A stretch of DNA of 64,000 nt from Basidiobolus meristosporus CBS 931.73 (lineage: Eukaryota > Fungi > Basidiobolomycota). The translations under genes were made by a program, and so were the position numbers. The notes under the pieces are model-generated. The model was not told the DNA's origin. It searched no databases and was given only the letters and a program-made list of their open reading frames with translations. The stretch covers positions 1 through 64,000 of the forward strand of contig MCFE01000002.1 of NCBI GenBank assembly GCA_002104905.1, given 5' to 3'. Every line of letters starts with the position of its first letter. Within the stretch, counting starts at the first letter, position 1. Positions 1 through 6,567 of the stretch are shown one piece after another.

Positions 1-142
1 AACCCTAACCCTAACCCTAACCCTAACCCTAACCCTAACCCTAACCCTAACCCTAACCCTAACCCTAACCCTAACCCTAACCCTAACCCTAACCCTAACC
101 CTAACCCTAACCCTAACCCTAACCCTAACCCTAACCCTAACC
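1..142 (+). repeat. Telomeric repeat tract (CCCTAA)n, about 23.7 perfect copies; left chromosome end
   Basis: Uninterrupted AACCCT repeats from base 1 to 142; this is the C-rich strand of the TTAGGG telomere. Confidence 0.99.
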
Positions 143-670
143 AAGAACACTTAGCCTTGTGGTTATCCCTAACCCTTCCATACCCATGGTTGTGGGTTCA
201 AATCCTGGATCCAGCAAAATTTGATTAATAAATTGATGTGTGCTCATTGGGAGATGGCTTGATCAACCATCGGGCAAAGTAAAGGCTCTGATTGGCTGAA
301 ATCCTTGAAATGCTAATTGGCCAGATTTGCCTAGTAAATTTGGCCAGTGATCGCCCAGAAATTCATCTCAGTTCCCCCAGTCTACTGGCCATTCCGGCCA
401 CAATTCAGCTACCGCAAACCAGTATAACTTAGCTCAGATATATTCAGATTCTCACTTCTCAGGCCTGGCTTTCCAGGAAACCTCTCTCAGACCTAGCTAA
501 CTAGGAAATATAGTACCACTCAGCTTCTCAACTCTCAGACCTGGCTTACCAGGAAGATATCTCTCAGACCTAGCTTTCTAGGAATAACTTCAGATTAACT
601 TGGCTTCTTTAGATACTTGTCATAAGTAAATAAAGATTTCACCACTTGGTGACTTTCCTCCCCCCTAACC
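143..670 (+). mobile_element. Telomeric array unit 1: 528-bp non-coding SINE-like element, apparently full length
   Basis: Starts directly after the telomere (CTAACC|AAGAACAC). Contains a tRNA-like A/B box head and a hairpin array. Ends TGGCTTCTTT(601)...AATAAA(629)...TCACC-ACTT-GGTGA(639-652)...C6-TAACC. No long ORF. Confidence 0.75.
152..205 (+). promoter_or_regulatory. tRNA-type (Pol III type 2) internal promoter-like A box and B box; repeated at 680-733
   Basis: TAGCCTTGTGG at 152-162 (one mismatch to TRGCNNAGYGG) and GGTTCAAATCC at 195-205 (fits GGTTCRANTCC). Spacing matches a class I tRNA. Acceptor, D and anticodon stems do not pair, so this is not a functional tRNA. Confidence 0.55.
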
Positions 671-1205
671 AAGAACACTTAGCCTTGTGGTTATCCCTAA
701 CCCTTCCATACCCATGGTTGTGGGTTCAAATCCTGGATCCAGCAAAATTTGATTAATAAATTGATGTGTGCTCATTGGGAGATGGCTTGATCAACCATCG
801 GGCAAAGTAAAGGCTCTGATTGGCTGAAATCCTTGAAATGCTAATTGGCCAGATTTGCCTAGTAAATTTGGCCAGTGATCGCCCAGAAATTCCTCTCAGT
901 TCCCCCAGTCTACTGGCCATTCCGGCCACAATTCAGCTACCGCAAACCAGTATAACTTAGCTCAGATATATTCAGATTCTCACTTCTCAGGCCTGGCTTT
1001 CCAGGAAACCTCTCTCAGACCTAGCTAACTAGGAATTATAGTACCACTCAGCTTCTCAACTCTCAGACCTGGCTTACCAGGAAGATATCTCTCAGACCTA
1101 GCTTTCTAGGAATAACTTCAGATTAACTTGGCTTCTTTAGATACTTGTCATAAGTAAATAAAGATTTCACCACTTGGTGACTTTCCTCCCCCCCCCTAAC
1201 CCTAA
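671..1205 (+). mobile_element. Telomeric array unit 2: near-identical tandem copy of unit 1
   Basis: Same 5' start (AAGAACAC). By eye it differs from unit 1 at two substitutions (attcatctc/attcctctc; ggaaatatag/ggaattatag) and in C-run length (9 vs 6). Followed by CCCTAACCCTAA. Confidence 0.8.
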
Positions 1206-1699
1206 ATCTCAAGCAACAAGGTTACAACTTATCCAAGATTGTTAACATGAGATTTATCAACAATCACACTCTGGAGGTAGTACTTGACAAAAGTATTGCT
1301 AAAGAGTTCTCTCAAAATGTCTCTGACCAGTTCTACTGGGAACCTACTGACCATGCCTTTAAAGAGTTTCCTGATTCTCCAGTTTACAAGACCTTCTCAT
1401 TAGAGGAATCTCTGCTCTCAAGATTCACTTCACTTATCAAAAACTCCCCTTCACCTGCTGTTACCCACTTCCTCAAAGATTATTATATCTCTCAAGCTTA
1501 TTTACTTCACTCCCCCATGAACCTGAACTCCAGTGTACTCTGGGATACTGCCTTAACTTTAGCTTAGATTTATTCATATTCAACTTGGTGTTTACTTTGG
1601 GAATCTTCTATTCCCAGCTGGCTTCTTTATTTGTAGTTAGACTTGTCTGAAATCAAATAAAGATTTCACCTACTTTGGTGACTTTCCCTCCCCTAACCC
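1206..1699 (+). mobile_element. Telomeric array unit 3: 5'-truncated coding element (subfamily A)
   Basis: Coding homology begins at the junction with the preceding telomeric seed. The 3' end carries TGGCTTCTTT(1619), AATAAA(1656), TCACC-TACTTT-GGTGA(1666-1681) and CCCTAACCC(1691-1699). Confidence 0.75.
1208..1567 (+). CDS. 5'-truncated ORF1/Gag-like (RRM-like) protein fragment, subfamily A
   Basis: The frame is open upstream of ATG 1247 (LKQQGYNLSKIVN-MRFINNHTLEVVLDK). It aligns without gaps to the unit-4 protein at roughly 45-50% identity by hand count, so the ATG at 1247 is internal. Confidence 0.65.
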   Translation, partial: LKQQGYNLSKIVNMRFINNHTLEVVLDKSIAKEFSQNVSDQFYWEPTDHAFKEFPDSPVYKTFSLEESLLSRFTSLIKNSPSPAVTHFLKDYYISQAYLLHSPMNLNSSVLWDTALTLA

Positions 1700-2365
1700 C
1701 TCTCCACTTCTCTTTCAGCTTCTTCCTTACCTTGCAACCCCTCAATTAGCTCTTCATCCAGTCAATCTGAAAATTCTCAGCAACCAGGAACTTCTACTAC
1801 TTGTACTCAGACCTACTCCCAAGCAATTCAAGCTCATCCAAAACCAGCTGCCCATCCATCAAGACAGTCTCCTAAGCCAGTGCACTCTAAAGCCAGAAGA
1901 AGATTCCCTGTCAGCCCTGATACTCCTCCTACTGCCAACTGGGCTGTTTGCTATTTCAGAAATGCAGGATATCTCCCAATATCAGAACAAAGAAACTACC
2001 TCAAGGACCTAGGTATTCATATGCCTAAAATTATTAACATTCAGTACATTGCCAGGGATCTCTTGGAAGTTATTCTTGACAAAGATATTGTTGAAGATTT
2101 TACAGAAGAAGTCAAAAATATGCTTGATTGGGAGCTCTCAGAGCATATATTCAGACATCATTTGGACATTCCACTCTTTGTGCCATTCTCTCTGGAAAAA
2201 GAACTCCTCAAAAGATTTACCAGCTTGTTGAAAAACTCTCCTTCCCTTCAAGTCACAAACTTCCTCAAGAAATACTACAGTGAACAAGCAGTCTTGCTAC
2301 ACTCTCCTCTAGACTTTGATATTGAGGATATTTGGGATTCAGCAAAGTCCAAGTTTATCTTGTAG
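1700..2365 (+). CDS. 5'-truncated ORF1/Gag-like protein fragment, subfamily B: S/Q/P/T-rich linker, beta-alpha-beta-beta-alpha (RRM-like) segment, helical C-terminus
   Basis: Hand translation shows the frame open from the junction at 1700 to TAG 2365 (222 codons). No ATG occurs until 2021; the upstream stop is the TAA of the neighbouring telomeric seed. Paralog of the unit-3 ORF. Confidence 0.65.
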   Translation, partial: LSTSLSASSLPCNPSISSSSSQSENSQQPGTSTTCTQTYSQAIQAHPKPAAHPSRQSPKPVHSKARRRFPVSPDTPPTANWAVCYFRNAGYLPISEQRNYLKDLGIHMPKIINIQYIARDLLEVILDKDIVEDFTEEVKNMLDWELSEHIFRHHLDIPLFVPFSLEKELLKRFTSLLKNSPSLQVTNFLKKYYSEQAVLLHSPLDFDIEDIWDSAKSKFIL

Positions 2366-2462
2366 GCTCCCTGCATCTCAGATATTCATATTCAAACTTG
2401 GCTTCTTTATTTATTATTTAAATAAGGATTTCACCCTTTGGTGATGATCATCCCCCTAACCC
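1700..2462 (+). mobile_element. Telomeric array unit 4: 5'-truncated coding element (subfamily B)
   Basis: Ends TGGCTTCTTT(2399), AATAAG(2421), TCACC-CTTT-GGTGA(2431-2444), C5 and CCCTAACCC(2454-2462). Shares TATTCATATTCAA(A)CTTGG with unit 3 after the stop codon. Confidence 0.75.
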
Positions 2463-2741
2463 ATTCCAGCCACAAAGCAGCTACCGCAAACCAGTATAAC
2501 TTAGCTCAGATATATTCAGATTCTCACTTCTCAGGCCTGGCTTTCCAGGAAACCTCTCCCAGACCTAGCTAACTAGGAAATATAGTACCACTCAGCTTCT
2601 CAACTCTCAGACCTGGCTTACCAGGAAGATATCTCTCAGACCTAGCTTTCTAGGAATAGCTTCAGATTACCTTGGCTTCTTTAGATACTTGTCATAAGTA
2701 AATAAAGATTTCACCGCTTGGTGACTTTCCTCCCCTAACCC
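2463..2741 (+). mobile_element. Telomeric array unit 5: 5'-truncated, slightly diverged copy of the unit-1/2 non-coding element
   Basis: Matches unit 1 from about 391 onward with roughly 7 differences. Has the same four hairpins and the same terminal signal (TCACC-GCTT-GGTGA 2711-2724, CCCTAACCC 2733-2741). Confidence 0.8.
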
Positions 2742-2933
2742 TCTTGCTACCCCCCTTCCCACTGAACAGAGTCTTGGGCACTGAAGAACTATCATCACTT
2801 CTTGTTAACTTACATACAAATTCCCCTCAGCTACACACTCTTGTTTCAAAGCTACAACAGTAGCACTGGCTTCTTTGTTTAAACTGAAATAAAGATTTCA
2901 CCTGTTGGTGACTGTATCCCCCCCCCCTAACCC
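2742..2933 (+). mobile_element. Telomeric array unit 6: short 5'-truncated unit carrying a 40-codon ORF tail
   Basis: Open frame 2741-2863 (PFPLNRVLGTEELSSLLVNLHTNSPQLHTLVSKLQQ*). Then TGGCTTCTTT(2867), AATAAA(2888), TCACC-TGTT-GGTGA(2898-2911) and C10-TAACCC. Confidence 0.7.
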
Positions 2934-2998
2934 ACCCTTTGGTGTTTATCATCCCCCCTAAATTTTACTCTATGGTGATTATTATCATCCCCGCTAAG
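2933..2998 (+). mobile_element. Telomeric array units 7-8: two tiny, degenerate 3'-end remnants marking the inner edge of the array
   Basis: CACC-CTTT-GGTG-TTTATCAT-C6-TAA (2933-2961) and ...TATGGTGATTATTATCAT-CCCC-GCTAAG (about 2962-2998) resemble the unit-4 terminus. Confidence 0.6.
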
Positions 2999-3216
2999 CC
3001 TGAGTTCTCCAAGATATGTAGACAATGATCTTAGTGCCTTAGCTAGGTGAGTATTGAGGCGTAATTACATATTTACAACAACAACAGCTGTGGTAACTGA
3101 CAATATATATTTAATGTTTTTGCACATTTTAATAATTGAGGCAAAAGTATACTCGCATGATATGTTTGGGGCGCAATAGTACTTGGATACACTATTTTAC
3201 CCTACATTTGTATCAA

Positions 3217-6200
3217 TTATACATAATCTATCCTATTATCGTCATCATCTAGTACAAACTCTAATATTGGATTGAGGGTTAGTGGAGATACTGCCACTTC
3301 GCCACAAAGATTGGCAACCATAGCTTTGTTATTTTCAATGTTGGCAAGTGCACCGGACTCTTGTAAGAGGCTCATGGCCGCTGTACTCCCTCTTAATGCT
3401 GCATAATGCAATGCTGTGTCCCCACTATTATTGATAGCGTTAACATTAGCACCAGCTCTGATGAGCAGCCTCAGCACGCCAATATAGTTTGCGATGTTTT
3501 CCGATTCGGAATCACCCATAGCTGCATTGTGCAATGGAGTATTACCTCTGTTGTTGGTAGTGTTGATGTGTGCACCCGCTTTTAAGAGAAAGTCTACTCC
3601 TTCGGGATTGCAGCTGCTTGCAAAGTAATGTAGTGGTACATTTCCTAATGAGTCTTTTCCATTGATATCTATACTATCATTAATCAGAAGAGAGAGTAGG
3701 TCTCTATCATAACAAGCACTAGCACAATGCAATGGAATGCGTCCGATACCGTCCTTATTGGTTACTTCTGCTTCGCTCGCAAGCAAATCTTTCGCGATGA
3801 CCTGCCTATCTGTACTCAAGGCTATATGCAGTGCTGTGCTTCCATAGAGGTTTTTGGAATTAATATCAGAACCGGCGTCCATGAGGGCGTTCACAGCAGT
3901 GCATTTGTTCAACTTGACTGCGAAATGAAGTGGTGTTTCCTTTTCTGCATTTCCATCATTAATTTCTGCTCCAAATATGAGGAGTAGCTTCAATGGAGCT
4001 AAGATATCGTTTCCTGCGGCATAATGGAGAGCTGTGTTACCAGCCGCATCCTTATCATTAACCACTGCCCCGGATTTTAGTAGAATTTTCATTAGACTTT
4101 GATCACCCATGAGTGTAGCTTGCTGCAAAGGAGTAATGCCATCGTAATTCTTTGTGTTAACATCAGCTCCTGCGCGAAGTAGAAGTCCGACGATTTCAAT
4201 ATTGCTGTATGATATTGCAACGAACAAGGGAGTATCTCCTGCGTAGTCCTTGATATCTACTTGTGCTCCGGAACGAATCAGGTAGTTGATGATTTTTTTA
4301 TGGCTCATTTGCACGCTATTATGCAAAGCAGTCCATCCTTTATGGTCTTTAGCATCGATATCTGCGCCTTGATTGATAAGATTTATCACGCCTTTGTAAT
4401 GGCCCACTTTTGCAGCAATATGTAGGTCGAAATCCTCCTCGGCATGCCGTTTCGCTCCAAATTTCTTCAGGAAGTCTATCATTATTTGATCTCCTATCTC
4501 AATGGCAAAGTCAAGTGGGCATTTTTTTCTTATATCGTATATGTTGATCTCTGCGCCAGCGTTTAGAAGTAATCTCACTATCTCTGTGCTCCCCATTTTA
4601 ATTGCCTTGTGTAGTGGAGTACCTTCGTTGTCCATAATATTGACATGCGCCCCAGCTTCAAGCAGAATCTCCATTATTGCAACATTATTGGATCGGATAT
4701 TAAACGTTGCCAACAAGATTCCTTTTGACGTAGCCTCTATACTAGCCCCACGAGCAAGTAAAAGCTTCACCAATCTCGGGTTTTCAGAAAGTACGGCGCG
4801 GTAGAGGGGCGTACTCCCATTATTATTCACCACGCTCAGGCTGGGTCCAGCTTCTAGCAGTAATTCGGCTATTGATTCATCCACAACAACATGTAGCGGG
4901 GTGTTACCACGGTCAGTAATAATGTTGGCATTCGCACCCTCATGAAGCAGTAGTTTCACTATTTCTACATGGCCATTTTCAACTGCATGATATAAGGGGG
5001 TGCCATACGAGTCATCCTCCACGTTGATATTTGCTCCAGCTCCAATTAATAGCTTTAGAACTTCAAGGTGACCATGCTCTGCAGCATATGTGGCCGGAAT
5101 TTCGCTTGCTACTGTCTCAATATTTATATTAGCTCCTGCTGATATCAGAAGCTGCGCAATATCTTTATATCCTTTTGCGGATGCGATATGAAGAGGGGTT
5201 TCTTCATGATCATTTTCGATATTAGTGTCTGCCCCAGCATCAAGTAGGAGCTTCACAATTGCACGGTTTCCTGATCGAACGGCATGAAGCAAAGGCGTTT
5301 CGTCTTGCGAATTTCGGATGTTAACATTGACCCCGCTCACGGCGAGCAGGAGTGTGACTAGTTCTTCGGCGCTTATTTGGGAGGCCAGATGTAGTGCCGA
5401 CTCTCTTTGCTCATCTAGTAGATTGACATCAACCTTCTTTGCTATCAATGCCCTCACTAGACTACACGAGTTTTTTATACAGGCCCAATGTAGCAATGTT
5501 CTGCCCTCAATACATGGAATGTCTTCAATTGATTCTGAAAACCTATCCATCCATCCAACTGCGCTTACCATATTTCCTAGCATGGTTTCCAATAAGGACA
5601 TCACTCCGCTAGAGATCCCGATATTCTCTTTGGCCATAAGTTGCACCATTCTCTTGGCATGCTCGTATGGCGTATTTCCCGCTTCGGTTGTATGGCTAGC
5701 TAGATGGTATTTAACTGAATCCAGCTGCATTTTTGCCCAATCAAGGGACTGTAGTATAGATACCACTTCTTGTAAATTGATCCGATCCTCAGGATTGATC
5801 TGAGTACAAGACTCAATCAGCTGTCGAACTTCATGTGGCAAATCCAGTGTTAGTGTCTCTACCAACTCCAAGTATATCGATTGTTCCTCTAGTTCTTTGT
5901 GCTTTCGTTTGGTGTGCCGAGGTCTACTAATTCGTTTGAATACCTTGAAGCACAGCATACCGAAGCTGTAAACGTCGCAACATGACCATAAGTTAACACT
6001 ACGATCTGATGAGCTTCCGGGAGCGATCCACTCGGTGTCCATCATCTTGTAATTTCTGTACTTCACACCGCCAATGAAGTCGACGATTTTTGGCTCCATA
6101 TCGCGATCTATTGTAATACTGGAAAGATTCAGCCCGGCATGGATCATCCCTGCTCCCAGAGCTCTTTCCAGAATCTTGGCTATCTTTAACAAAATTATTC

Positions 6201-6567
6201 GCATACCTTCCCAGCCGACTGTGTCACCATGCTCGTTAACAAACTCATCCAAAGTTGGATCGGATACATTCTCTGTGACCAGCCAATATAGCGGGCCACC
6301 TCCATCTTCATCGCCCGCAATTAAGCCTAATGGTGTGGGCAACCCTTCTATGCCCAATCCTGTCAGCAACTTCATCTCAGCAACGGCTTCATCGTGGTCT
6401 ATTAAGGTCGAATTAACCTCTCTTATAGACACCAGTCGATCTTCCAAGATTCCTGTTAATATTCTCTCTTTTCCACCCGTAATGAGCTCCTGTACTGAAC
6501 TTATATCGGCTCGTTGAATTATTAAAGGAGACATAAGAGCTAAAAGGCGATCTGATTTACTTGGCAC
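3217..6567 (-). CDS. Pseudokinase plus about 22 ankyrin repeats; apparently intronless (first ATG at 6534)
   Basis: 1116-codon ORF. The N-terminal kinase fold has degenerate motifs (VSIRE, IHAGLNLSS, DFI, WIAPG, DVYSFG). About 22 GxTPLHxA...LLxxGAxVN repeats follow. Confidence 0.9.
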   Translation of the reverse strand: MPSKSDRLLALMSPLIIQRADISSVQELITGGKERILTGILEDRLVSIREVNSTLIDHDEAVAEMKLLTGLGIEGLPTPLGLIAGDEDGGGPLYWLVTENVSDPTLDEFVNEHGDTVGWEGMRIILLKIAKILERALGAGMIHAGLNLSSITIDRDMEPKIVDFIGGVKYRNYKMMDTEWIAPGSSSDRSVNLWSCCDVYSFGMLCFKVFKRISRPRHTKRKHKELEEQSIYLELVETLTLDLPHEVRQLIESCTQINPEDRINLQEVVSILQSLDWAKMQLDSVKYHLASHTTEAGNTPYEHAKRMVQLMAKENIGISSGVMSLLETMLGNMVSAVGWMDRFSESIEDIPCIEGRTLLHWACIKNSCSLVRALIAKKVDVNLLDEQRESALHLASQISAEELVTLLLAVSGVNVNIRNSQDETPLLHAVRSGNRAIVKLLLDAGADTNIENDHEETPLHIASAKGYKDIAQLLISAGANINIETVASEIPATYAAEHGHLEVLKLLIGAGANINVEDDSYGTPLYHAVENGHVEIVKLLLHEGANANIITDRGNTPLHVVVDESIAELLLEAGPSLSVVNNNGSTPLYRAVLSENPRLVKLLLARGASIEATSKGILLATFNIRSNNVAIMEILLEAGAHVNIMDNEGTPLHKAIKMGSTEIVRLLLNAGAEINIYDIRKKCPLDFAIEIGDQIMIDFLKKFGAKRHAEEDFDLHIAAKVGHYKGVINLINQGADIDAKDHKGWTALHNSVQMSHKKIINYLIRSGAQVDIKDYAGDTPLFVAISYSNIEIVGLLLRAGADVNTKNYDGITPLQQATLMGDQSLMKILLKSGAVVNDKDAAGNTALHYAAGNDILAPLKLLLIFGAEINDGNAEKETPLHFAVKLNKCTAVNALMDAGSDINSKNLYGSTALHIALSTDRQVIAKDLLASEAEVTNKDGIGRIPLHCASACYDRDLLSLLINDSIDINGKDSLGNVPLHYFASSCNPEGVDFLLKAGAHINTTNNRGNTPLHNAAMGDSESENIANYIGVLRLLIRAGANVNAINNSGDTALHYAALRGSTAAMSLLQESGALANIENNKAMVANLCGEVAVSPLTLNPILEFVLDDDDNRIDYV

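Follow-up and report, generated by a model that had tools for sequence, protein, structure and literature searches.

A probable stack of telomere-specialised non-LTR retrotransposons and their non-autonomous partners at a chromosome end of Basidiobolus meristosporus

Positions 1-2998 of the window, a 64-kb stretch that begins at the left chromosome end, are probably a terminal stack built by a telomere-specialised non-LTR retrotransposon system. A terminal tract of telomeric repeats, reading (CCCTAA)n in the + strand, occupies 1-142 (TRF: (AACCCT)23.7, 100% identity). Inward of this tract lie eight units, all on the + (C-rich) strand with their 5′ ends outward. The first host gene, an ORF for a 1116-aa protein kinase with ankyrin repeats (3217-6567, − strand), lies outside the elements. 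The initial annotation had described a telomere-specific retroelement array of about eight outward-pointing C-strand units, and both the number of units and their pattern, with the 5′ ends facing outward, a constant 3′ end and 5′ truncation of variable extent, agree with that description. The units belong to four sequence classes, LINE-A, T1, T2 and a SINE. A mixture of coding and non-coding classes with a common 3′ signal had been correctly described, and the "at least three" classes then counted become four in the window.

The two outermost units are full length. U1 (143-665) is a 520-nt SINE-like unit and U2 (671-1196) is a second SINE; both start at reference position 1 according to BLAST. 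They are in identical register, and repeat families D1 and D3 are 100% identical between them at 528-nt spacing. U1 ends in a C-run (660-665) and the telomeric seed TAACC (666-670), and U2 in a C-run (1188-1196) and the seed TAACCCTAA (1197-1205). The other six units are 5′-truncated, and in U3 and U4 the cut falls inside an ORF, a pattern that the initial annotation had noted for most of the array. U3 (1206-1693) corresponds to the ORF1-only element T2 cut at reference position 436; it retains the C-terminal 120 codons of the T2 ORF with the stop codon at 1565-1567, followed by the 3′ module described below, and its identity to the complete T2 ORF in L042 is 98%. U4 (1698-2456) corresponds to a second ORF1-only element, T1, cut at reference position 204, and contains an open frame (1697-2362), a stop codon (2363-2365) and the 3′ module. 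U5 (2461-2735) consists of the last 275 nt of the SINE (reference start 247), shows 97% identity to U1 and U2, and has a 2-nt CC microhomology at its junction. U6 (2741-2926) is a terminal fragment of LINE-A that begins at reference position 4225 of 4401 (96% identity); its ~180 nt comprise the end of ORF2 (...NSPQLHTLVSKLQQ and stop) plus the 3′ module. U7 (2933-2957; repeat family D5/D9) is a bare T1-type tail with the second hairpin, spacer and C-run, followed by the seed TAA at 2958-2960. The innermost and oldest unit, U8 (2961-2996; repeat family D9), is a degenerate T1-type tail ending in CCCCGC-TAA. Unique DNA starts at 2997, and the read-contig depth is down to the single-copy level from 2977.

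All units end in a run of 4-9 C, a length that may include long-read homopolymer errors, and then in TAA, TAAC, TAACC, TAACCC or TAACCCTAA. Neither poly(A) nor a target-site duplication was found in any unit of the window, in agreement with the initial annotation. The motif GATTTCACC-N2-6-TGGTG is present in six of the eight units, U7 and U8 retaining its distal part only; zero matches were expected from 100 shuffles, and no further match was detected in the 64-kb window outside 1-3000. The idea of a common terminal signal was correct, but the full signal extends beyond this short motif to a two-hairpin module of about 55-75 nt. The module is composed, in order, of SL1 (with AAUAAAGA in its 3′ arm), UU, SL2 (UCACC/GGUGA), a spacer of 7-10 nt and the C-run, and it ends in about one telomere-complementary repeat. 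An example is located at 602-663, and other copies at 1130-1191, 1620-1693, 2400-2455, 2674-2735 and 2868-2921, all on the + strand. The two-hairpin minimum-energy fold was identical in five families, and the consensus fold contains 15 pairs, four of them with compensatory changes. The 3′ UTRs are tiny (~60-130 nt). Such a compact and conserved 3′ module looks like a recognition and priming signal. An AAUAAA sequence is found about 30 nt upstream of the C-run; no RNA run was found to contain the sequence.

A linked reverse transcriptase (RT) ORF, the lack of which the initial annotation had named as contrary evidence, was found as ORF2 of LINE-A. LINE-A, an autonomous LINE, is about 4.4-4.8 kb long and consists of 5′ tandem monomers, ORF1 (502 aa; coiled coil and RRM-like domain) and ORF2 (922 aa), the two ORFs being separated by an in-frame UGA. 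A first look revealed at least 1,415 LINE-A candidates, and copies are 98-99% identical; a second LINE (B), which likewise ends in the 3′ module, was found at other ends. ORF2 encodes an N-terminal APE-type endonuclease and an RT. The RT matched RVT_1 (2e-24 to 5e-25), its closest solved structure was human L1 ORF2p (8e-13), and the closest database matches were unnamed APE-RT proteins of about 30% identity, some from aphids. The endonuclease part showed weak Pfam matches to Exo_endo_phos. Its AlphaFold model had 143 PDB matches at E ≤ 0.001; all 50 listed were APE-fold nucleases, and among these L1-EN was on top (4e-7), with APE1 and TRAS1-EN (2.9e-6) also present. The APE catalytic residues N, Y, GDxN, D and SDH are conserved, and Asp takes the place of the metal-binding (catalytic) Glu in each of the three relatives with sequence covering that position. 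In ORF2 residues 690-922, neither a Pfam domain nor a CX2CX6HX3C...RHD pattern was detected. The dN/dS values across ORF1, T1, ORF2 and the APE part (0.11-0.29; 0.11 for APE) point to purifying selection on the coding regions. Since the APE domain is included, an endonuclease step cannot be dismissed, and its conservation argues that nicking matters.

With a LINE RT, an N-terminal APE, a fixed 3′ end, variable 5′ truncation and no LTRs, LINE-A is assigned on its sequence to the APE-type non-LTR (LINE) retrotransposons. The 3′ poly(A) or simple-repeat tail of LINEs is absent, the units ending in the C-run and TAACCC-phase letters with no A-run. As such a tail is not universal among LINEs, its absence does not exclude membership. 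Membership in the CRE/SLACS/MoTeR/FoTeR/Cnl1 group was ruled out by the two ORFs, the N-terminal APE and the lack of a C-terminal restriction-like endonuclease; the analogy to CRE, MoTeR and Cnl1 drawn earlier fails because the endonuclease type differs.

T1 and T2 are 0.9-1.1 kb long and encode a single ORF of about 270-297 aa without RT; T1 has at least 151 genomic matches, with a typical open frame of 297 aa. In BLASTP, the T1 and T2 proteins matched the C-terminal 150 aa of LINE-A ORF1 (1e-17 to 1e-19); their dN/dS is 0.16-0.20. Judged from these similarities, T1 and T2 are ORF1-only, HeT-A-like non-autonomous elements equipped with the 3′ module of the LINE. The T1 model contains a helix at 27-72 (coiled coil), an RRM-like beta-alpha-beta-beta-alpha-beta unit at 147-217 and a helical end; the RRM-like unit matched many RRMs (VIA Z 6-7.5). 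Foldseek gave no significant match for the model, Transposase_22 was not found, and L1 ORF1p was absent among the matches listed. The SINE (520 nt) has no ORF and has its 3′ tail in common with LINE-A. An A-box-like TTAGCCTTGTGG and a B-box-like GGTTCAAATCC can be recognised in the SINE sequence, and neither ARAGORN nor Rfam made a tRNA call.

Across the 89.5-Mb genome, 1,618 matches to the strict motif were counted, compared with 0 in the reversed control; their strand bias (132/1,486) reflects contig orientation in the assembly. The genome-wide distribution was taken from a sample, namely the first 100 motif places and the best protein matches. Many further chromosome ends carry the motif in the orientation seen here: all 50 located copies, on 26 contigs, point outward, at 0.4-22 kb from the contig end (median 4.1 kb), and the mixed orientation that the initial annotation had named as contrary evidence was not observed. 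A TTAGGG tract of 118-243 nt closes 14 of 17 other sampled contig ends, and a candidate TERT is present in the genome. LINE-A 5′ starts are scattered from position 1 to 4376 (34 sampled copies); SINE copies are mostly full length, LINE copies 5′-truncated at scattered points. The ends differ from one another in the order of their units, in truncation points, in the lengths of the C-runs and in the seeds. In the read contigs, at least 48 alternative joints were found, and all 15 of those listed depart from unit 3′ ends. The array layout recurs in B. ranarum, in Logan/ENA relatives and in distant metagenomic relatives, the last bearing variant telomere-like repeats at their 3′ ends. In one of these, L071, the repeats are CCTAACG and CCCTATCA; being variant, they are element-encoded. 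Near one end of contig C1, array units are separated by 12 kb of DNA without recognised elements, an observation that speaks against the reading given next.

The stacks are best read as products of repeated rounds of target-primed reverse transcription at the end of the G-strand, followed by telomerase capping. The LINE ORF2 protein would recognise the module both on the RNA that encodes it (in cis) and on the RNAs of T1, T2 and the SINE (in trans). The C-run/UAACCC end of the RNA may then pair with the G-strand 3′ end at the chromosome terminus, and reverse transcription would lengthen the G-strand outward, a frequent early stop leaving a 5′ truncation. The primer 3′-OH might be provided by an APE nick or by a free end. 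At the new end, either a further element would be added immediately or telomerase would supply a TTAGGG cap. Given such growth from outside, the oldest units should adjoin the first gene. Identity to the young reference is indeed higher for distal than for proximal units (permutation p = 0.0003; 16 of 20 arrays), which dates the distal ones as the younger. G-overhang priming followed by telomerase re-capping is plausible. However, internal telomeric seeds measure 1-9 nt at 80 of 84 junctions and 12-25 nt at the other four. Compared with the terminal tracts of 118-243 nt, such seeds show that a full telomere was not rebuilt between most additions, and simple overhang priming with full re-capping therefore misfits most junctions.

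It is possible, although we favour it less, that elements insert inside the tract as in the TRAS/SART style, the APE nicking the G-strand of duplex telomeric repeats at a fixed position with no need of a free end. The retained APE fold with most of its catalytic residues, its dN/dS of 0.11, the structural match to the TRAS1 endonuclease and the constant junction phase, in which TAACCC-phase letters invariably come after the C-run, are consistent with this mode, but the catalytic Glu is changed to Asp. Moreover, random insertion in a tract of 120-240 nt predicts proximal tracts of varied length, whereas 80 of the 84 are at most 9 nt, and the gradient from young distal to old proximal units fits addition at the very end. 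More doubtful is the formation of stacks in single events, in which the RT, on reaching the 5′ end of one RNA or falling off it, switches to a second module-bearing RNA at its 3′ end, and the seeds are copied RNA 3′ termini instead of telomerase products. Seeds of 1-9 nt would suit such jumps, as would the enrichment of 1-4 nt microhomology at junctions (at least 2 nt at 12 of 30 junctions against ~6% expected), the tandem tail-only units of 30-45 nt (U7/U8, and units of 40 and 41 nt in L038) and the element-encoded repeats of L071. The 12-25 nt tracts at four junctions do not, and the identity gradient indicates that stacks accumulate over time, so that single events cannot explain whole arrays. 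It is very improbable that subtelomeric recombination or segmental duplication has spread the arrays as mere relics, without ongoing telomere-directed retrotransposition: sequence exchange is common among subtelomeres, and many short telomere-ended contigs in the assembly are possibly redundant copies, but the end-to-end variation in order, truncation points, C-runs and seeds, the fixed 3′ and scattered 5′ ends, the uniform orientation and the intact, 98-99% identical ORFs under purifying selection speak against it. Endonuclease-less Penelope-like elements, to which the initial annotation had likened the array, can be set aside almost with certainty: Athena/Coprina are likewise terminal and 5′-truncated, with their 5′ ends outward and a short stretch complementary to the telomere at the 3′ end, but their RT is of a different class, they lack both APE and ORF1, and they contain hammerhead ribozyme motifs (PMC4209133), whereas the families found here, for which this origin is refuted, have a LINE-type RT behind an APE domain in a two-ORF element, and no hammerhead or other Rfam match was found in window 1-3300 at E up to 1.

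Successive addition at the G-strand end recalls the HeT-A/TART/TAHRE elements of Drosophila, which also form head-to-tail terminal stacks with outward 5′ ends, variable 5′ truncation and the oldest copies innermost. HeT-A, abundant, gag/ORF1-only and borrowing its RT from a related autonomous LINE, parallels T1 and T2. However, Drosophila has no telomerase, no short repeats and oligo(A) junctions, while here a TTAGGG cap and a candidate TERT coexist with the elements, junctions carry a C-run and a TAACCC-phase seed, a SINE participates and the 3′ UTRs are short. Bombyx TRAS1 and SART1 (R1 clade) are likewise two-ORF APE LINEs confined to telomeric repeats and coexisting with telomerase-type repeats; their 3′ UTR structure, together with pairing between RNA end and target, is believed to determine where reverse transcription begins. 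They differ in having poly(A) and in residing within long TTAGG tracts in two opposite orientations, one per family, whereas only 1-9 nt of repeat separate most units here and all share one orientation. We know of no ORF1-only or SINE partners described for TRAS/SART.

Among fungi, MoTeR1/2 (Magnaporthe), FoTeR (Fusarium) and Cnl1 (Cryptococcus) are similarly telomere-repeat-associated and 5′-truncated with 5′ tandem repeats, and MoTeR2 is a non-autonomous partner sharing its ends with MoTeR1, as the hitch-hikers do here. They form one CRE/SLACS-like clade with a single ORF, a C-terminal CCHC and PD-(D/E)XK restriction-enzyme-like endonuclease, and then 3-7 TAACCC repeats (PMC12857005). The combination of ORF1 with an N-terminal APE-RT ORF2 therefore indicates an origin independent of these elements. 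In the stringent LINE-SINE pair UnaL2/UnaSINE1 of eel, the non-autonomous partner also carries the 3′ stem-loop of the LINE, which is thought to be recognised by the RT, and poly(A) is not the recognition signal; these elements insert genome-wide, whereas here the tail is telomere-complementary and all partners occur at chromosome ends only. Giardia GilM/GilT and Chlorella Zepp are LINE-like head-to-tail telomere stacks with a telomerase-repeat cap at truncated 5′ ends, as here; their element structure differs, however: GilM/GilT are not known to carry an APE, and Zepp, unlike the present elements, has poly(A). To our knowledge, no consortium with ORF1-only elements or a SINE has been described for either, telomere-specialised retrotransposons are known from few lineages only, and the sole well-studied partnership of gag-only elements with an RT donor is that of Drosophila, without telomerase.

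The consortium of LINE, ORF1-only elements and SINE has evolved independently, and telomere targeting has thus arisen two or more times in fungi, on the basis of different endonucleases. It coexists with canonical TTAGGG repeats and a candidate TERT gene, and is present on many telomere-ended contigs of a culturable fungus, at several hundred ends by a rough estimate. The system opens to experiment how an RT is aimed at chromosome ends and how retroelements and telomerase share them; whether many Basidiobolus mini-chromosomes depend on these elements also becomes approachable. A working role of the elements in the maintenance of chromosome ends, beyond that of telomere parasites, seems unlikely on present evidence. 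Ends without a TTAGGG tract would in that case be healed by reverse transcription of module-bearing RNAs, whose 3′ C-run/UAACCC might act like the template-alignment region of telomerase, and telomerase would cap the product. If true, this fungus, which has hundreds of small chromosomes, would offer a living intermediate between telomeres maintained by telomerase only and the retrotransposon-only telomeres of Drosophila, carried by an old APE-LINE lineage that is telomere-bound also in unrelated metagenomic organisms.

The window begins with a perfect (AACCCT)23.7 tract at positions 1-142 and therefore represents the left end of a chromosome, with the C-rich strand as the + strand. The tract is followed by eight + strand units (U1 outermost, U8 innermost) reaching to 2996, and the terminal head-to-tail array claimed in the initial annotation is thus present at 143-2996. 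U1 (143-665) and U2 (671-1196) are identical copies, in the same register, of a 520-nt non-coding element (SINE), and U5 (2461-2735) is a 5′-truncated copy of 97% identity. U3 (1206-1693) and U4 (1698-2456) carry related ORFs (48% protein identity) and belong to the ORF1-only elements T2 and T1, respectively. U6 (2741-2926) is a short 3′ fragment of LINE-A, a LINE, while U7 and U8 (up to 2996) are tails only. The 3′ ends of the units consist of 4-9 C followed by T, TAA, TAAC, TAACC, TAACCC or TAACCCTAA, and neither poly(A) nor target-site duplication was found at the window units. The motif GATTTCACC-N2-6-TGGTG was present in six units (chance expectation: none) and had no match in the rest of the 64-kb window. 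Summed short-read contig depth was 1e4-1e6 over 143-2976 versus about 115 over the unique flank (2977-3400), a 100- to 8,000-fold excess that, according to the tool, is not a copy number; the elements may nevertheless be far more numerous than the assembly shows. Inward of the array, the first host gene occupies 3217-6567 on the - strand. It lacks introns, and its 1116-aa product combines a Tyr/Ser-Thr kinase-like domain with some 20 ankyrin repeats.

The initial annotation had proposed a search of other chromosome ends for the terminal motif. The strict form, AATAARGATTTCACC-N2-6-TTGGTGA, gave 1,618 matches in the genome (89,489,060 bp in 1,366 contigs; reported assembly size 89.49 Mbp, 10.1101/2025.03.31.646025) and none in the reversed control. 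Positions relative to contig ends were sampled with 50 of these matches, on 26 contigs of obtained length. All 50 are minus-strand matches separated from the right end of their contig by 0.4-22 kb (median 4.1 kb), and hence face outward. Among the matches listed, those on the forward strand were mostly near left contig ends, with a few further inside (e.g. C80:18333 and C613:98030; C-numbers denote contigs of the assembly). A TTAGGG tract of 118-243 nt closes 14 of 17 sampled contig ends, and the telomere-ended contig C1034 (at least 267 kb) carries outward-facing elements at both ends. About half of the first 95 contigs have a terminal array, including C21, C22 and C23 of about 20 kb, which suggests several hundred telomere-bearing ends in the genome. 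These are either real mini-chromosomes or separately assembled alternative array haplotypes. Old cytology suggests mini-chromosomes. On contig C1, outer and inner array units are separated by about 12 kb (about 329,600-341,870; retrieved DNA pieces L032/L033) that lack recognisable elements and contain several ORFs of 130-280 aa on the opposite strand. A Pfam search of these antisense ORFs detected no domain, and the stretch may be captured subtelomeric DNA or an undescribed element.

A reverse transcriptase ORF linked to the motif, which the initial annotation had marked as something to look for, was found in LINE-A. This element encodes a 502-aa ORF1 and a 922-aa ORF2, the latter with a match to RVT_1 (2e-24 to 5e-25), and the nearest solved relative of its RT is human L1 ORF2p. 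In a fold search, the model of the ORF2 N-terminus matched L1-EN (4e-7), APE1, ExoIII-type enzymes and the TRAS1 endonuclease (2.9e-6); phmmer with the APE region alone gave no match among PDB sequences even at E 10. The APE catalytic residues (Asn, Tyr, GDxN, Asp and SDH) are kept, and the metal-binding Glu is replaced by Asp in LINE-A and in both relatives that cover the position. Full-length copies begin directly after telomeric repeats with one to three tandem monomers of about 113 nt, which recall L1 promoter monomers, and the 5′ UTR contains an embedded AACCCTAACCCTAA about 70 nt upstream of the ORF1 ATG, as read from L059:4469-4842 (- strand) and the reverse complement of L060 (756-930). 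LINE-A copies show 98-99% protein identity, with at least 1,415 first-look candidates. A second element, LINE-B, was found at other chromosome ends; it has its own tail variant, and its ORF2 is 36-51% identical to that of LINE-A.

The LINE-A ORF1 ends in A-TGA-CT(A/C), after which ORF2 resumes directly in the same frame (L059:2888-2896, - strand; L064:2112-2120; L065:905-913; L066:1666-1674; L070:1690-1698). The APE catalytic Asn lies 6-10 codons past the ORF1 stop, whereas no Met occurs in the ORF2 frame before codon 141. UGA-CUA is among the known read-through contexts. It seems likely that ORF1 and ORF2 are fused by programmed stop read-through in the manner of gag-pol, and the junction is kept in five relatives.

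T1 and T2 are about 0.9-1.1 kb long and have a single ORF of about 270-297 aa. Their proteins align to the C-terminal 150 residues of LINE-A ORF1 (1e-17 to 1e-19) and share a coiled coil with it. T1 and T2 are ORF1-only partners without RT, an arrangement known from HeT-A. In the predicted model of the T1 protein, a long helix and a disordered linker precede an RRM-like domain (Z 6-7.5 against many RRMs), and the end is helical; Foldseek gave no match in PDB at E ≤ 0.001, and Pfam gave coiled-coil noise or nothing for ORF1, T1 and ten distant ORF1-family members. Values of dN/dS were 0.20 for T1 subfamilies compared with one another, 0.16 for T1 against its Basidiobolus ranarum homologue, 0.29 for ORF1, 0.16-0.18 for ORF2 and 0.11 in the APE part, indicating purifying selection on the coding regions. 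A search of RNA runs found none containing the sequence. The SINE head (window 151-205) has A-box-like TTAGCCTTGTGG and B-box-like GGTTCAAATCC words about 30 nt apart, with CCCTAACCC embedded between them. ARAGORN predicted no tRNA in the window or in relatives, and Rfam gave no match across window 1-3300 with E values allowed up to 1, hence neither a hammerhead nor a tRNA-like family. The 5′ ends of T1 and T2 are C-rich (CCCACCCTCCCACCCC). Given such telomere-like or C-rich 5′ sequences, the cDNA of every family would have a G-rich, telomere-like 3′ end.

The last 55-90 nt are predicted to adopt a common fold in each of the five families, which relatives from other samples share. This 3′ module starts with a stem-loop (SL1) of 9-19 bp, whose 3′ arm carries AAUAAAGA, followed by two unpaired U, a second stem-loop (SL2; UCACC/GGUGA with a loop of 4-6 nt), 7-10 unpaired nucleotides and the C-run. 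For the five tails taken from the window and L066, folding against shuffles yielded z-scores between -2.2 and -3.3; further tails were also folded. The RNAalifold consensus of 12 tails has 15 pairs, four of them with compensatory changes. Examples are the replacement of C-G by A-U at the SL1 base and of U-A by A-U at the pair closing SL2 in B. ranarum. A G-U change occurs at one SL1 pair in four sequences. Loops and upper SL1 vary freely from family to family. By analogy with stringent LINE-SINE pairs, this pattern of variation would point to a structure that a protein recognises.

Junctions were examined at 26 chromosome ends (84 junctions in 164 kb). The C-run was 4-10 nt long, although homopolymer lengths may be inexact in this long-read-based assembly. 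The TAACCC-phase seed after it measured 1-9 nt at 80 junctions and 12-25 nt at the other four, compared with 118-243 nt in terminal tracts. The 5′ ends of LINE-A are spread across the entire element. Most SINEs have their full length, and AACC always precedes them. A stretch of 2-4 nt fitted both the seed and the proximal unit at 12 of 30 clean junctions (about 6% expected). Units consisting of a tail alone (30-45 nt) are found in tandem, as in U7/U8 and in L038. Unit order varies from end to end. Within arrays, the distance to the young reference is smaller for outer than for inner units (net 50 of 129 pairs; 16 of 20 arrays; p = 0.0003 by within-array permutation). Short-read contigs of the source sample contained at least 48 alternative joints, and all 15 listed start at unit 3′ ends. 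A run from another study with the same species label contained the SINE and tails at 90-95% identity, with tail-to-head joints.

The array polarity implies that the cDNA extends the G-strand. Successive target-primed reverse transcription at the chromosome terminus would be expected to leave the traces found here: 3′ ends that are fixed, 5′ ends that are scattered, SINEs of full length and an age gradient. In such a process, the module would be the obvious candidate for the recognition signal, and the C-run/UAACCC would have an obvious pairing partner in the TTAGGG 3′ end. Every complete end has a TTAGGG cap, and a TERT candidate (C935:173109-173423, - strand; L062/L063) shows two exon-like Telomerase_RBD matches (1.6e-8 and 9.8e-7, both above the curated cut-off). 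Therefore, telomerase most likely caps the last unit. The initial annotation had envisaged priming on the G-rich overhang followed by re-capping. Terminal reverse transcription fits the traces, but the internal seeds are too short to reflect the rebuilding of a full telomere from one addition to the next. Each addition must instead take place on an end nearly devoid of repeats, immediately after another one (through re-priming or template jumping), or from a nick beside the base of the tract. The conservation of the APE domain likewise does not fit the scheme of the initial annotation. Of these inferred routes, we rank end-priming with bursts first. Nick-dependent insertion comes second, and pure recombination ranks last.

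A 2023 survey of telomere-associated elements lists SART/TRAS, GilM/GilT, Zepp1, MoTeR1, Tx1-1_ACar, Athena and HeT-A/TART/TAHRE (PMC10088271). All fungal telomeric elements (MoTeR1, FoTeR and Cnl1) were assigned in 2025 to a CRE/SLACS-like clade, whose endonuclease is restriction-like and C-terminal (PMC12857005). In contrast, the Basidiobolus LINE has an N-terminal APE and two ORFs, which rules out the MoTeR/Cnl1 analogue and makes the system an independent fungal invention. It resembles the Drosophila elements in layout, those of Bombyx in enzyme type and coexistence with telomerase, and stringent LINE-SINE pairs in its shared 3′ stem-loops. A full-text literature search for Basidiobolus with telomere or retrotransposon found no description of the system.

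The relatives look like an old telomere-bound LINE lineage. Out of 1.84 billion representatives, only 53 proteins matched the ORF1 profile at E ≤ 0.001, and the T1 protein has its nearest named homologues in B. ranarum. In that species (GCA_040143965.1), T1 homologues of 62% identity have 5′ monomers of about 96 nt (L067:1-200), the same module and CCCCTAACC; one adjoins a subtilisin gene and another lies inside a multi-unit stack. A Logan contig, whose ORF2 is 59% identical, terminates in the module and then CCCCCTAACCCTAACC. Two distant ORF1-family members reside in APE-RT LINEs whose 5′ ends adjoin (CCCTAA)n. One of them, L071 (JGI metagenome 3300008116), starts with a (CCCTAA)12 cap; next come a LINE (ORF1 of 567 aa, APE/RT of 940 aa) and, head to tail, a B-box-bearing SINE with the same type of 3′ tail (cap and SINE regions: 1-90 and 4620-5200). 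The LINE and SINE 3′ ends carry telomere-like repeats (CCTAACG three times, CCCTATCA twice) that, being variant, must be element-encoded rather than made by telomerase.
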